This document shows positions 2,698-22,598 of a stretch of DNA of 64,000 nt, in pieces. Positions within the stretch are counted from its first letter, which is position 1. The number at the start of each line of letters is the position of its first letter. Both the position numbers and the translations under genes were made by a program. Below the pieces are notes generated by a model. It was not told where the DNA came from and searched no databases. It worked only from the letters and a program-made list of their open reading frames with translations. Origin of the DNA: Octopus sinensis. Lineage: Eukaryota. The stretch spans positions 49,972,001 through 50,036,000 of the forward strand of contig NC_043004.1 in NCBI RefSeq assembly GCF_006345805.1, in the 5' to 3' direction.

Positions 2698-3029
2698 TTA
2701 AGTAGAAACTTGCTTCGACTGGTATTTATTTCGTAAAGTCTTCTTCAGATTGTTCCAGAATGCAGTTTGAAGATGAGTGCCCTCTGAGTCTGATGGCCAT
2801 TGTAGGTAGGTGACTGTTTCCAAAATGAATTTTAGATTTTTATCTTTGATGTCTAAATCCTTGAAATTACCGAGAATAACAGGAATAATTCTGTGACGAA
2901 GTTTGAACATTTCCTGTTGGGCTACTTGGTATTCCATCCGGGTCCACTCGCTGTCTATATAATCATTGGTTAGCACCAGAAGCGTTCTTCTGCTGTTTTG
3001 TATGCTTTCTATGATATTGTTTGAAATAG
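2698..3029 (-). CDS. Gene A coding exon 4 (TIR domain C-terminal half and stop)
   Basis: Acceptor catttacag| at 3030/3029. In frame with exon 3: (T)ISNNIIESIQNSRRTLLVLTNDYIDSEWTRMEYQVAQQEMFKLRHRIIPVILG...VTYLQWP...FWNNLKKTL, TAA at 2698-2700. Typical TLR-type TIR C-terminus. Confidence 0.93.
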
Positions 3030-3156
3030 CTGTAAATGTACAAGAAAATCATTGATTAGAAACAATTTCACTCATATAGATAGATAGATAGATAGATAGA
3101 TAGATAGATAGATAGATAGATAGATAGATAGATAGATAGATAGATAGATAGAGATA

Positions 3157-3531
3157 TCTCTCTATATATATAAACGGCAAAATGTGTGTGTAAGTGTGTG
3201 TGTGTGTGCGTGTCCTTTGTACAAATCCGCAATTTTTCAGTTAGAGGGCTCGCACTTTCTATGGTCATTCAAAACCGTCCAAGGGTGGTCGTGCACATAT
3301 TTACATTTCCCCAGTCACCCCGCAAAGCCATTTAAAAATCAATAGAAGTTGCTTATTTTGTGAATTTTCTATCCAAAACCCAATCAAAATGGCCGAAACT
3401 TGATACGTCAATTGAATGCCAGAATGTGATTGGTCGGAGATTTGGAGAGTACTCGCGTGTATGTGCGCACGCACGCAGCTGCATATGCATGCACTATCAC
3501 TATGATCCGGCGTTGCCGGTCATACTGCTAG
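3157..3531 (+). mobile_element. Non-autonomous Helitron
   Basis: A|TC...TATATATAAA 5' end, ccggcgttgccgg hairpin, CTAG|T 3' end. Confidence 0.8.
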
Positions 3532-4048
3532 TATATTAATAATTATTTCAACCTTGAGTATATGGTTAGTAGTATGCCGATTTAAGCACTTTCACCGTTT
3601 AGGCTACCTGAGGTCATCCACAGTTTTGATGTAAATGCCATTGGAGCTAACTCAGGAATTCCGCGGTGTTCGTTGAGCTTATAATGGATAGACGCAACGA
3701 AGAATGGAGTTTGCAAGAATATTTAATCAATACAACGATCGTTTCAACCCATCCTGTTTCTGTCCCTTGCACGCGGGATACTGTACAACTAGTTATGTTG
3801 CATCCACCAGTATTTAGCGAAGCATTTTGTATAAAATAAGCTAGTTTAACATATTTAGCAATAACTGATTAATTATTAGCGATTCTTTGAGAAAGGGGAG
3901 GAGGGGAGGTAACTTTACGAAATTAAGGATCAAACGCTGAAAATTAATAAATCTTTTTTTATCTTTTGGTCAAGAGGTAAGGTGGTACGACGACCATTAA
4001 AAATCCTCTGAGGTCTTGGGGGTGGGAGAGACGGTATCCTCGAACAAG

Positions 4049-4270
4049 GCGGCGAGCTGGCAGAAACGTTAGCACGCAGGGAGAAATGCTTAGCGGTATT
4101 TCGTCTGCCGAGTTCAAATTCCGCCGAGGTTGACTTTGCCTTTCATCCTTTCGGGGTCGATAAATTAAGTACCAGTTACACACTGGGGTCGATATAATCG
4201 ACTTAATCCCTTTGTCTGTCCTTGTTTGTCCTCTCTGTGTTTAGCCCCCTATGGGTAGGAAAGAAATAGG
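4049..4270 (+). mobile_element. SINE-like family B; other copies at about 8250-8375+, 15960-16155-, 24340-24480-, 24570-24715-, 33318-33480+, 43160-43385+, 63480-63700-
   Basis: Repeated ggcggcgagctggcagaa...gagttcaaattccgccgagg...ctttcatcctttcggggtcgataaattaagtaccag. Confidence 0.85.
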
Positions 4271-18794: not shown

Positions 18795-19105
18795 ATCCGT
18801 CGGTTACGACGTCGAGGGTCCCAGCTCAACGGAACAGCCTGCTCGGGAAATTAACGTGCAAGTGGCTGAGAATTCCACAGACACGCGTACCCCTAACGTG
18901 GTTCTCAGGGAGATTCAGCATGACATAGAGTGTGACGAGGCTGGCCCTTCGAAATGTAGGTACTATTCATTTTTGCCAGCTGAGTGGACTGGAGCAGCGT
19001 GAAATAAAGTGTCTTGCTCAAGGACACAACGCGTCGCCGGGAATCGAACTCACGACCTTACAATCGTGAGCCGAAAGCCCTAACCACTAAGCCACGCGCC
19101 TTCAC
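18795..19105 (-). mobile_element. tRNA-derived SINE family D (partial head also at 59165-59310+)
   Basis: gtggcttagtggtt...gagttcgattccc head; 11-bp direct repeat tttggtatgta at 18778-18788 and 19128-19138. Confidence 0.85.
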
Positions 19106-19616
19106 AAGTAAAGAGATAGGGCAGAAATTTTGGTATGTAATAATATATTATATGATATAATATATTCCTCTGTAGGTTTCAACTCTGTCATGCATTTAAC
19201 TCTATAATGTATTCGTTTACGTAACGATTATCGTACAACTTTGTCGTGTTTGTTAAGGAAAAACAAGCTTAAGTAATTTACGTTGTTGTAATAAAAACAC
19301 TTAAGCAAACTCTCCTGTTTCATTCTACTCCTGTGTGGTAAGGAGCTTGCTTCTCAACCACCACATGGCTCCAGATTCAGTCCTACTGCATGGCACCTTG
19401 GGAAAATGTCTTCTTATATGGCCTCGGGCTGACCAAAGCCTTGTGAGTAGATTTGGTAGACGAAAACCGAAAGGAGCCCATCGTATATGTATATATATAT
19501 ATTATATATATATATATATATATATATATAAAATTAATTAAGGGTAGAAATTGATATTTATCAATTAGGACCAGTGGTCTAGCATATTCAAAAAGAATCC
19601 GAAGATTAAAATATTT

Positions 19617-19827
19617 ATATATACCAATTAAGAACTGAACACGAAAAGTGGACAGTCAACATGCTAGATATAGACGTCAAATCGCCATTCACCACAAAAG
19701 ATTATGTTCTCAGATCAAACTGAGTTTGATCTGAGAACATAATCTTTTGTGGTGAATGGCGATTTGACGTCTATATCTAGCATGTTGACTGTCCACTTTT
19801 CGTGTTCAGTCCTTAATTGGTATATAT
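19617..19827. repeat. Near-perfect palindrome, about 100-bp arms with a 3-nt spacer
   Basis: 19621-19720 is the reverse complement of 19724-19823 with one mismatch; spacer tga. Confidence 0.95.
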
Positions 19828-21457
19828 ATATATAATATATAGATATATATATATTATATATATATATATATAGGGAGAGTTTACGAAAAAAACCCAAAAA
19901 AGACGAAGACAGGTGGTGTACAAAACAAACAGGTGTATTAGTATAACGCTCAGGAATAGAAAAAGTCTTTTACGTTTCGAGCCTACGCTCTTCTACGAAA
20001 GGGACACAGAAAAAAACAAGGAGAGAAAAATTGTGTAGTGGCTAACGATCTATCATGGCGACTATGTGTGTATATATATATATATATATATATATATATA
20101 TTATATATATATATAATGTGTATGTATATATATATAATGTATATATATATATAATATATTATATATATATTATATATATATATATATATATATATATATA
20201 TATATATATATATATTATGTATGTATGTATATTTTATGTGTCTCTGTCTCTGTTTCTGTGTTTGTCCCCGCATCATCGCTTGACAACCGATGTTAATGTG
20301 TTTACGTCTCCCGGAACTTAGTGTTTCGGCAAAAGTGACCGATAGAATAAGTACTAAGCTTTACAAAGGATAAGTCCTGGGGTCGATTTCTTCAACTAAA
20401 GCCCTTTAAGGCGGTGTCCCAGCATGGTTGCAGCCAAATGACTGAAACAAGTAAAAGACTAAAAGAACAGATATATGCACGCGCACACACAGGCACACAC
20501 ATGTAAAGAGAGAGAGAAGGGAGCAGAGAGAGAGGAAGAGAGAGAGAGAGAGAGAAAAGATAGAGAGAGGAACAGAGAGGGAGAGAGGAAAAGAGAGAGA
20601 TGGGACAGAAAGATAAGACATATAAAGAAATAGGACAGAAAGGGAGAGGGATAGAGAGAGAAGGGAGAGGGAAAGGGAGAGAGAGGACAGAAAGATTGGA
20701 CATGTAAAGAGATAGGACAGAAAGAGAGAGTGAAAGGGAGAAATAGGGAGAAGATGTAGAGAGAGAGAGAGAGAGAGAGAAACACAGGTATATCAAATAT
20801 CATGTAGCATAAATTCTTGATACGTCTAGGGAGACTCATTACGCCAGTATAAATAACACACACATTTATGATTTGTGAATTGGTCAAATATCCGATTGCT
20901 TTGTTTTTGTTTGTTATTGAAAAGGTTGCAAGTAGCAACGAAATAACTTTAACAAACAAAAGCAAAACAATCGGTTATTTAACCAACTAACTACTAGTAA
21001 TAAATGAGTGGAATTGAAACAGTGTTAATTAAATTGGCATAGTGATTCTCTCTAGACACAATAAAATTTGTTTCAACACACGAATTCACATAAAGAATCT
21101 TGCAAGTCAGATACAAAAACGAAATATGTTCTTGATTTATTCAAATTATCTATCTCTAGAGGATGTGTCACAATTATCAAATGGCAACTGAGACCAGGTC
21201 CATATGAGAAGGGGAGATAGTTGACATACCATATGACTTAACAGCTAAGGTTTTCAAATACACACGTACAAATACAAATACAAATACACACACACAAATA
21301 TATACATACATACATACATACATACATACATACATACATACATACATACATACATATATATATATATATATATATATATATATATATATATATATATATA
21401 CATACATATATACATTCATAATCTTACAATTGTTGTAAGTGGGGCAAAATGACTCAC

Positions 21458-22598
21458 CTTTGTATTGTTCTGTGCAGTTCGAAGAAGGCGTAAAATTGCC
21501 TGGACACTCGCAATATTCTTCATATCGTAACAAAATACAATTGCCAATTGTGCAGTTCCTGTGACAAGGCTCAGTGCATAGATCTCCTGTCCACTGTGGT
21601 TTGCAACTACAGTACATATCTCCGTCATTCCCAAGCACACATATACCATTGGCACATAGATCACACATGTACTGTTCTCCGTCACTTAACTTACGGCACT
21701 GCAAACTATTGTTGTATTTCACACACGTTTCATCGCTTCCACAATGAGTCGAATTCACGGTACAGATTTTGGGTGAAACAGTTGGAGATTCAGAGGTCCC
21801 GTTGTTGTTGGTGGTGTTGTTGCTGTTGTTGTTGTTGTCGTCAGTGTTGTTATTGTTGACCATACGGCATTTGTATATTCTACCATTACCTTCACGAATG
21901 CACTTTTTACCGTTTTTACATGCTTTCCACAGCGGGTGGCAGGTCGCCGCTTTAACAATCAAATCCACTGTTTTGTTAAAGGTTATGATTTTGGGGTTGA
22001 AGCTTCCGTCGTTGTGGTTACTCTCATTTCTGTTGTTGTTGCTGCTGTCATTGATGATGCTGACGGTAGTGCTCTTGTTCGTGTTGTCATTCTTGCTGCT
22101 GTTGCTGCTGTTGTTGTTGTTGATGATGATGATACCATTGGAGTTATTACTGTAGCTTTCGTTGTTGTCAGTGATGCTGATGTTGCTGCTGCTAGTGTTG
22201 CTGTTGTTGATGATGCTAGCATCGATAGCATCGCTGCTGCTATTGCTGTTGGTAATGTTCTTGATGTCGTCAGTATTGTTGTTGGCGATGGTGACGTTCG
22301 TATTCATCTCGTTGTTGTTGCTGTTATTGCCGTCAGTGTTGTTATTGTTGACCAAACGGCATTTGTATATTCTATCATTACTGTCACGAATGCACTTTTT
22401 GCCGTTTTTACACGCATTCCACACCGGGTGGCAGGTCGCCGCTTTAACAATTAAATCCACTGTTTTGTTAAAGGTTATGATTTTGGGGTTGACGTTACTG
22501 ACGATATTTCTTTTGTTGACGATGAAGCTGCTAGTTTCGATATGTATCACACTTGCCATCAATGTGACAATATATAACAGAACAGTTGCTTCCTTCAT
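21458..22598 (-). CDS. EGF-TM-TIR receptor gene A, coding exon 1 (signal peptide, three 4-Cys modules, Asn-rich stalk, two EGF-like domains)
   Basis: ORF MKEATVLLYIVTLMASVIHIETS (signal-peptide-like). EGF-like patterns CDLCANGICVLGNDGDMYCSCKPQWTGDLC and CHRNCTIGNCILLRYEEYCECPGNFTPSSNC. Strong phase-1 donor AAAG|gtgagt at 21458/21457; the rest of the listed ORF is read-through into microsatellite. Confidence 0.9.

Follow-up and report, generated by a model that had tools for sequence, protein, structure and literature searches.

A TIR-domain gene of Octopus sinensis predicted to encode a cephalopod member of the molluscan EGF-TIR receptor family

Introduction

What kind of receptor carries a TIR domain behind neither the leucine-rich repeats (LRRs) of a Toll-like receptor (TLR) nor the immunoglobulin (Ig) domains of an IL-1 receptor (IL-1R)? 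The question is raised by a gene on the minus strand of a 64,000-nt stretch of the Octopus sinensis genome (herein the window; NC_043004.1, positions 49,972,001 through 50,036,000), a locus placed near 49.97 to 49.99 Mb of CM016866.1 in assembly GCA_006345805.1 (mapped region 49,964,698 through 50,004,598). An initial annotation, made from the letters of the window, had described a hidden receptor with EGF-like modules, a transmembrane (TM) helix, and a TLR-like TIR domain, spread over four exons and belonging to no named family. Our analysis indicates that the locus is almost certainly one genuine protein-coding gene, encoding RefSeq isoform X1 and belonging to a mollusc-wide EGF-TM-TIR family, and, as far as sequence comparison can tell, that its product is a fast-evolving cephalopod member of that family. 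The class name “EGF-TIR” originates in an immune-gene survey of the oyster Crassostrea gigas (PMC4346834), and LOC101856027 and LOC101855416 are the two “EGF-TIR” genes of Aplysia californica (PMC9334734, Table 5). Because the exact protein is in RefSeq and the family has been named in print, we regard it as a previously undescribed cephalopod representative of a known family.

Results

A four-exon gene whose product is already in RefSeq

The gene has four coding exons that extend over 19.9 kb, from window position 22598 down to 2698 (Table 1). AG...GT is found at every internal exon border, all three junctions are in phase 1, and the 1785 coding nucleotides translate into 594 residues and a stop. 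By exact look-up this splice product is identical to O. sinensis isoform X1 (XP_036361280.1/XP_036361281.1); the N terminus of XP_036361280.1 is the product of exon 1, which codes for the complete ectodomain. Against this record the four exons, coordinates, splice sites, phase, and length given by the initial annotation are correct residue for residue. The TM exon was indeed absent from the list of open reading frames (ORFs): it encodes 56 residues, and the list starts at a length of at least 90. What does not hold is the description as hidden, since the exact product is isoform X1 and two other isoforms accompany it; only the names are uninformative, and the Octopus vulgaris model is split.

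The names are misleading. Isoform X1 is called “putative uncharacterized transmembrane protein DDB_G0293652”; isoform X2 (XP_036361282.1; 538 residues from exons 1, 3, and 4, the TM exon being skipped) “probable serine/threonine-protein kinase DDB_G0272254”; and isoform X3 (XP_036361283.1; 511 residues, with exon 3 running 20 nt further and the TIR frameshifted) [quoted passage not shown] Such Dictyostelium-style product names are most likely artifacts of Asn-rich low-complexity stretches. In O. vulgaris, exon 1 alone is annotated as a 382-residue “Hypothetical predicted protein” (CAI9726568.1), and a separate partial TM-TIR product of 211 residues is named “uncharacterized transmembrane DDB_G0293652 isoform X1.” The 211-residue model looks like a prediction error because it starts inside the TM helix and then continues into non-homologous sequence.

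No locus is on record for O. bimaculoides P0016 and P0180 or for Mercenaria P0005, and the exon structure was compared with that of one ortholog, from the limpet Patella caerulea (P0011), whose exons of 754/156/144/482 nt have phases 0/1/1/1, the same as those of the octopus exons of 1141/168/144/332 nt. In Patella, too, the ectodomain is encoded by a single exon, followed by a TM exon of 156 nt in phase 1-1, a third exon of exactly 144 nt, and one last exon. The RefSeq product, the conservation of the family, and the Patella gene structure thus support the gene model and its family membership well, independently of transcript data.

In octopus and Patella alike, the TM exon has a length divisible by three and is in phase 1-1. 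Forms lacking the exon that encodes the TM helix and juxtamembrane segment (TM/JM) are on record for this gene (isoform X2), for an O. bimaculoides paralog (isoform X3), for Mytilus californianus (X2, which is X1 minus 55 residues), and for Ruditapes philippinarum (isoform X2), with further GenBank models of this kind from Mactra and Sinanodonta; the proteins concerned are P0016, P0021, P0033, P0074/P0186, and P0077. This recurrence could reflect a conserved splicing switch or, equally, gene predictors that repeatedly drop a small exon.

A single TM helix and a TLR-like TIR domain

Hydropathy analysis gives one strong hydrophobic helix at about residues 389 through 415, followed by KRRFRFF. 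With KRRFRFF on the inner side and the N-x-S/T sequons (29 of them N-terminal to the helix) outside, the predicted topology is single-pass type I. A full-length AlphaFold2 (AF2) model, built on a 16-sequence family alignment, places a helix at residues 392 through 417, and a TM/JM profile matches at residues 399 through 441. The juxtamembrane motif MWKRRFRFFMKFAHYFQPYVDK aligns to the family motif MW[KR]xR..MK..HY.Q.YED.

Pfam reports a TIR domain at residues 441 through 590 (E 4.8e-21) and nothing else notable in the 594-residue product. The best PDB sequence match of the TM-TIR half is the TIR of TLR2 (E 1e-22), next come TLR15, TLR1, TLR6, and TLR10, and Hydra TRR-2, IL-1RAcP, SIGIRR, and MyD88 follow lower down. 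The alignment with TLR2 covers box 1 (YDVFISY), the BB loop (RDFVPGE vs. RDFIPGK, with the proline kept), and the FW box. Structural comparison agrees: the top Foldseek matches of the TIR are the TIRs of TLR10, TLR2, TLR15, TLR1, and TLR6. Confidence in the AF2 model, expressed as predicted local distance difference test (pLDDT) scores, is 80 to 90 for the TIR and TM regions and about 80 for residues 300 through 380, and falls below 30 for residues 85 through 226 and 246 through 287. Hydropathy, the Pfam TIR match, the family alignment, and AF2 with Foldseek therefore support the architecture first proposed: signal peptide, EGF-like modules, a TM helix with KRR inside, and a TLR-like TIR.

An ectodomain of EGF-like modules

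The ectodomain has 24 cysteines in five modules. Two membrane-proximal modules have the full complement of six cysteines; the other three have four each, spanning residues 56 through 80, 220 through 244, and 279 through 301 with the spacing C-x6-C-x5-C-x8-10-C. The initial annotation did not recognize these 4-Cys modules. In the family alignment they line up with Cys1 through Cys4 of the EGF-like modules at the N terminus of relatives (CxNGGTC motif); they are EGF-like modules without the Cys5-Cys6 sub-loop. A second AF2 model, of residues 270 through 380, has a pLDDT of 83, and its best folds in the PDB are three-EGF stretches of Notch1, EGF11-13 and EGF4-7, over 106 to 119 aligned columns; at a probability of about 0.9 and an E value of about 3e-3 the Foldseek scores are modest, as is usual for repeats that are small and rich in disulfides. 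A new fold for the 4-Cys modules was considered and is ruled out by the family alignment together with this structural match to tandem Notch EGFs. In the full-length AF2 model, module A is a β-hairpin with a pLDDT of about 73.

Between modules A and B lies an Asn/Ser-rich spacer (residues 84 through 199), predicted to be disordered and open to heavy N-glycosylation, for which the AF2 pLDDT is below 30 and whose coding DNA consists of AAC/AGC-type triplet repeats. Exon 1 holds a 193-nt direct repeat, 21819 through 22011 and 22311 through 22503, 91% identical and 492 nt apart; modules A and B, each with part of the Asn-rich stretch that follows it, thus stem from a recent internal duplication. 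The region from about residue 30 to 265 is absent from the neighboring paralog described below, from its O. bimaculoides ortholog P0035, and from O. bimaculoides XP_014788257.1, which carries a near-identical juxtamembrane motif. The two extra truncated EGF modules and the long Asn/Ser-rich spacers of the octopus protein are not seen in the O. bimaculoides proteins retrieved. Since the N-terminal region is missing in all three relatives, parsimony points to a gain, and this long and probably glycan-covered part was most likely acquired in the O. sinensis/O. vulgaris lineage.

A mollusc-wide EGF-TM-TIR family

The same C-terminal architecture was present in 22 of the 26 first matches from a collection of 5.8 billion proteins. 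The relatives are from bivalves (Mercenaria, Dreissena, Pecten, Sinanodonta, Mactra, Potamilus, Ruditapes, and Saccostrea), the limpets Patella and Lottia, and O. bimaculoides, together with transcript-sized contigs. In the 16-sequence alignment, the 12 cysteines (C312...C375) in the pair of EGF-like modules nearest the membrane, the juxtamembrane motif, and the core and boxes of the TIR are invariant or near-invariant. When Pfam was run on 15 relatives, EGF_TEN was matched in 9, EGF_2 in 5, and EGF_Teneurin in 4; in family members it is the region of EGF-like module 2 that matches EGF_TEN or EGF_2.

A family profile run against 1.84 billion representatives returned 738 proteins below E 1e-30. 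Sub-profiles found contiguous EGF-TM/JM-TIR in about 80 of 174 retrieved proteins, and the ten lowest-scoring contiguous members are all molluscan, Aplysia LOC101856027 (P0090) among them. When a profile of alignment A1 was run on the collection of 5.8 billion proteins, low-complexity words overwhelmed the search (8 matches from 8000 candidates), which nonetheless recovered the split O. vulgaris model and O. bimaculoides P0035.

In a maximum-likelihood tree of 25 family members and 4 LRR-type outgroups, the grouping mostly follows molluscan lineages. A cephalopod clade (support 85/98) contains the window protein, and Aplysia LOC101856027 lies within the same ingroup; the split between ingroup and outgroup is weakly supported (66/91). 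The terminal branch of the window protein is 1.42 long, as against 0.2 to 0.6 for the other cephalopod sequences. Besides this long branch, the octopus protein differs from other family members in having no C-terminal tail after the TIR, and from the aligned bivalve members in lacking the extra “CC” cysteine that most of these carry in EGF module 2.

All features of the EGF-TIR family that could be checked are present in the octopus protein: a C-terminal TIR, EGF-like modules before the TM helix, the juxtamembrane motif, placement in the tree, and gene structure. What it shares with other molluscan EGF-TIR proteins extends to the 12 EGF cysteines and the TIR boxes and, in the limpet ortholog, to a matching exon structure. 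The relation to bivalve EGF-TIR proteins that had been suggested is borne out by the family alignment, the profile, and the tree; the assignment to a cephalopod type outside any named family is superseded, as the protein sits within a mollusc-wide EGF-TM-TIR family that includes Aplysia LOC101856027.

Distinction from TLRs, IL-1Rs, and other TIR receptors

Resemblance to TLR1/2/6/10 is closest in the TIR, where these receptors rank first by sequence (E 1e-22 to 1e-18) and by structure and share box 1, the BB loop RDF(V/I)PG, and the FW box, and it includes the single-pass type I topology. Unlike TLRs, the octopus gene and the window have no LRR ectodomain: Pfam found no LRR match, and tblastn was negative. 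The protein is therefore not a TLR by definition, and its recognition of ligand must differ in kind. The IL-1R family and SIGIRR are likewise similar in having a non-LRR ectodomain, a TM helix, and a TIR with a significant match; they differ in their Ig ectodomains, and their TIRs are less similar than those of TLR1/2/6/10. Pfam found no Ig domain in the octopus protein and the window has no match to the Ig parts of hemichordate proteins, and hence the protein is not an IL-1R.

The tblastn queries were seven LRR-type (TLR-like) TIR proteins and six hemichordate TIR proteins with Ig or HYR ectodomains. Over the 64 kb they match only the two TIR exons, and no LRR- or Ig-coding first exon was found. 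The idea that the TM-TIR exons belong to a first exon of LRR or Ig type elsewhere in the window is thereby rejected, and the initial claim of a receptor with neither LRR nor Ig stands on both Pfam and tblastn.

HyTRR-1/2 of Hydra (PDB 4w8g) offer another LRR-less invertebrate TM-TIR arrangement, with a TIR match of E 1.8e-13 by sequence and a TM-score of 0.77 on the target. They are thought to act with a separate LRR partner (PMC6321704), which by analogy is a possible model for the use of a co-receptor in octopus. Their ectodomain is very short and not made of EGF arrays.

Among the matches looked up, the next-closest non-molluscan TM/JM-TIR modules are in hemichordate Ig/HYR-TM-TIR proteins from Ptychodera flava, Saccoglossus kowalevskii, and Glandiceps talaboti (P0107, P0116/P0181, P0120, P0123, P0127, and P0139). 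These match the family profile at E 1e-54 to 1e-72, and some have a weak N-terminal EGF_TEN match. Their ectodomain is mostly Ig and HYR, and the two membrane-proximal EGF modules are absent. The match hints that the TM/JM-TIR module may be older than the molluscs.

Neighborhood of the gene and a TIR-less paralog

A partial duplicate of the gene lies head-to-head with it in inverted orientation, 17.6 kb from its ATG (Table 1). Exon 1 of this paralog is 61% identical in amino acids, and across some 200 nt the promoter and 5′ untranslated region (UTR) of the two copies have a mean column identity of 85%. RefSeq lists the paralog as a protein of 210 residues (P0179) under the wrong name “basic-leucine zipper transcription factor J.” Its syntenic ortholog is O. 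bimaculoides P0035, with two exons of identical layout and a C-terminal tail that is 79% identical. Three EGF cysteines are changed to Tyr in the O. sinensis paralog, which suggests decay or altered function. No second TM/TIR copy was found downstream of paralog exon 1 on the plus strand up to position 64000, even at E < 5.

The initial annotation had allowed for additional exons in intron 1, a sensible caveat: there is one 108-nt candidate (Table 1), which would sit between the EGF and TM exons and is absent from all three O. sinensis RefSeq isoforms. Its translation (…ENRRGYSTSSSRMADHLNPFPE) is 59% identical over 37 residues to part of the stalk in O. bimaculoides XP_014788257.1. This is about the neutral level, non-coding DNA of the two species being ~84% identical, and we therefore rate the cassette exon as a candidate only.

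Intron 1 also holds a Mos1-type mariner transposase fragment (8537 through 8830, plus strand; Pfam HTH_48, E 3.8e-8), and mariner-like DNA occurs again just downstream of the gene, at 2148 through 2534. A dispersed, SINE-type-looking (short interspersed element) repeat of about 250 to 430 nt, 75 to 93% identical and in both orientations, has copies at 5372-5801, 16254-16503, 17017-17444, 20177-20476, 34634-34903, 39590-39910, and 50813-51221, several of them within introns of the gene. The gene table that accompanies the source assembly shows the entire EGF-TIR gene nested antisense within a plus-strand gene with Pfam 7tm_7 products (gustatory-receptor-type, 350 to 480 residues) that begins before the window and ends near 29168; Pfam searches of single plus-strand open frames, aimed at exons of this host gene, gave no match. 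The strongest self-match of the window pairs 37459 through 38181 with 60673 through 61404 in inverted orientation, 91% identical over about 730 nt. The Pfam matches of the longest other ORF (54596 through 55816, minus strand; 406 residues) all lie below threshold (a coiled-coil family; GIY_YIG_2, E 0.0036), and this ORF may be a mobile-element remnant.

Table 1. Window coordinates of the EGF-TIR gene, the modules that it encodes, and the neighboring paralog
Feature	Coordinates	Strand	Description
5′ UTR / proximal promoter region	22599..22799	-	Inverted duplicate at 40033-40217
Coding exon 1	21458..22598	-	1141 nt; ATG at 22598; residues 1-380 plus 1 nt; donor GTGAGT at 21457
Signal-peptide-like leader, residues 1-24	22527..22598	-	MKEATVLLYIVTLMASVIHIETSS; hydrophobic N terminus; kept in the paralog and in O. 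bimaculoides relatives
4-Cys module A, residues 37-83	22350..22490	-	C-x6-C-x5-C-x10-C; truncated EGF-like module, CxNGxxC motif
Asn/Ser-rich low-complexity spacer, residues 84-199	22002..22349	-	41 Asn and 24 Ser among 117 residues; rich in N-x-S/T sequons
4-Cys module B, residues 200-247	21858..22001	-	Recent internal duplicate of module A
4-Cys module C, residues 276-305	21684..21773	-	PKICTVNSTHCGSDETCVKYNNSLQCRKL; truncated EGF-like module; present in the paralog and in O. bimaculoides too
EGF-like module 1, C312-C341	21576..21665	-	PROSITE EGF_1 match CSCKPQWTGDLC at 330-341; six Cys invariant in 16 family members
EGF-like module 2, C345-C375	21474..21566	-	Membrane-proximal; six Cys invariant in 16 family members
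Intron 1	8104..21457	-	13.35 kb; microsatellites, SINE-like repeats, Mos1-type mariner fragment
Candidate cassette exon	10379..10486	-	108 nt in intron 1; phase 1-1, AG/GT borders, open frame; 36 residues, AEPKPRTFTHPSLRENRRGYSTSSSRMADHLNPFPE
Coding exon 2 (TM exon)	7936..8103	-	168 nt, phase 1-1; short stalk, TM helix, juxtamembrane motif MWKRRFRFFMKFAHYFQPYVDK
Coding exon 3	5073..5216	-	144 nt, phase 1-1; codes for the TIR from box 1 (YDVFISY) to box 2 / BB loop (RDFVPGE)
20-nt exon 3 extension of isoform X3	5053..5072	-	Alternative donor GTGAGT; exon 4 frame shifted, TIR truncated; P0029 sequence ...PGESKYRLVYFKQYHRKH...
Coding exon 4	2698..3029	-	332 nt including TAA at 2700-2698; remainder of TIR with box 3 (FW)
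Paralog exon 1	40218..40728	+	Codes for the leader, a short N-rich stretch, and three EGF-like modules, one of them truncated and two full
Paralog exon 2	42993..43114	+	40-residue C-terminal tail, hydrophobic segment (FYTVFIMPVLISILTNI), stop; no TIR

Discussion

We favor, with a probability of about 0.55 for identity and mechanism taken jointly, a real EGF-TM-TIR receptor that would dimerize through its ectodomain and recruit MyD88. For the mechanism alone, ectodomain-driven dimerization leading to assembly of a MyD88-type adaptor, we infer roughly even odds. The EGF ectodomain would bind a protein ligand or a co-receptor, or self-associate; two receptors so brought together would allow their cytosolic TIR domains to dimerize through the BB-loop surface, and the TIR dimer would nucleate assembly of a MyD88-type adaptor and with it NF-kB/MAPK signaling. 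The receptor would then resemble a Toll/IL-1 receptor in action and differ from it in the sensing head. More speculatively, the TM-skipped isoform X2 and the TIR-less paralog, as soluble or signaling-dead versions of the ectodomain, could damp the pathway.

Several points weigh against this proposal. No functional study of any mollusc EGF-TIR protein was found in the literature searched, and isoforms X2 and X3 would not yield a working receptor. The long terminal branch of the octopus protein could reflect relaxed constraint rather than adaptive change. Pfam identified no EGF family at E ≤ 1 in the 594-residue product, and the EGF assignment accordingly rests on the cysteine pattern, the PROSITE EGF_1 match, the family alignment, AF2, and Foldseek.

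Other functions can be proposed for the same gene model. The protein might be a developmental, neuronal, or cell-contact receptor, its EGF modules serving contacts with other cells or with matrix (teneurin/Notch-like) and its TIR acting as in Drosophila Toll-6/7 or vertebrate IL1RAPL. Teneurin-type EGF models are the most frequent in the relatives, Notch EGF arrays are the best folds, IL1RAPL TIRs are significant matches, and the hemichordate receptors that carry the next-closest TM/JM-TIR modules resemble adhesion molecules; the ectodomain, however, is fast-changing, with module duplication between close Octopus species, which is more typical of immune receptors, and we regard a developmental role as unlikely. 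A different proposal is a signaling-dead regulator or decoy: the protein, or its dominant isoforms, would sequester ligand or a TIR partner and damp Toll/IL-1-type signaling, in the manner of vertebrate SIGIRR. Of the three RefSeq isoforms, two are unable to signal across the membrane (X2 without the TM exon, X3 with a truncated TIR), the paralog provides a TIR-less ectodomain nearby, TM-less forms recur across the family, and the SIGIRR and IL-1RAcP TIRs are among the significant structure and sequence matches. We nevertheless think a dedicated decoy quite unlikely: boxes 1 through 3 and the BB-loop proline, which signaling TLRs need, are intact and conserved in the family, and the TIRs of TLR1/2/6/10 match far better than that of SIGIRR (1e-22 vs. 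8e-11).

An enzymatic TIR that cleaves NAD+ upon oligomerization, like those of SARM1, plants, and bacteria, would make the protein an executioner that acts through cell death or metabolism. E517 (SEWTRMEY), invariant in the 16-sequence alignment, aligns with the Glu that is catalytic in TIRs from plants and bacteria, and the RUN1, AbTIR, and SARM1 TIRs are detectable matches. But TLR2 has a Glu there too, and the NADase TIRs match about 20 orders of magnitude more weakly than the TLR TIRs; vertebrate receptor TIRs are not known to act as NADases. Catalysis of this kind seems very improbable. Least credible is a mis-joined model, in which exon 1 and the TM-TIR exons would belong to different transcription units, as the two separate O. 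vulgaris products would have it. Three RefSeq isoforms join exon 1 to the TIR exons, EGF-TM-TIR is contiguous in about 80 homologs, including contigs of 1.7 to 2.5 kb that are too short for introns, intron positions and phases are identical in Patella, and the window search returned no LRR- or Ig-type first exon that the TM-TIR exons could use instead.

The TM-less isoforms may have a role of their own: if the splicing switch is real and regulated, skipping of the TM exon would turn a signaling receptor into a secreted EGF-TIR protein, a soluble decoy with the TIR placed outside the cell. A regulated TM-exon switch, a conserved TIR-less tethered paralog next door, and an ectodomain that grows through recent duplication of modules and expansion of repeats could together make up a rapidly diversifying, self-regulating non-LRR immune receptor system, a tentative picture that we hold to be rather unlikely as a whole.

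What is new here is modest: corrected naming, a family signature, a conserved exon structure, a lineage-specific expansion of the ectodomain, a TIR-less neighbor, and recurrent TM-less isoforms. The products of the locus should be named EGF-TIR receptor or EGF-only paralog; the O. vulgaris gene is at present annotated as two. The signature of two EGF modules, a TM helix, the juxtamembrane motif, a TIR, and phase-1 exons eases the collection of further members for comparative immunology. Of all molluscs, cephalopods have the TLR sets that are smallest and vary least (PMC10279657); with so few TLRs, non-LRR TIR receptors may carry more of the sensing load in these animals.

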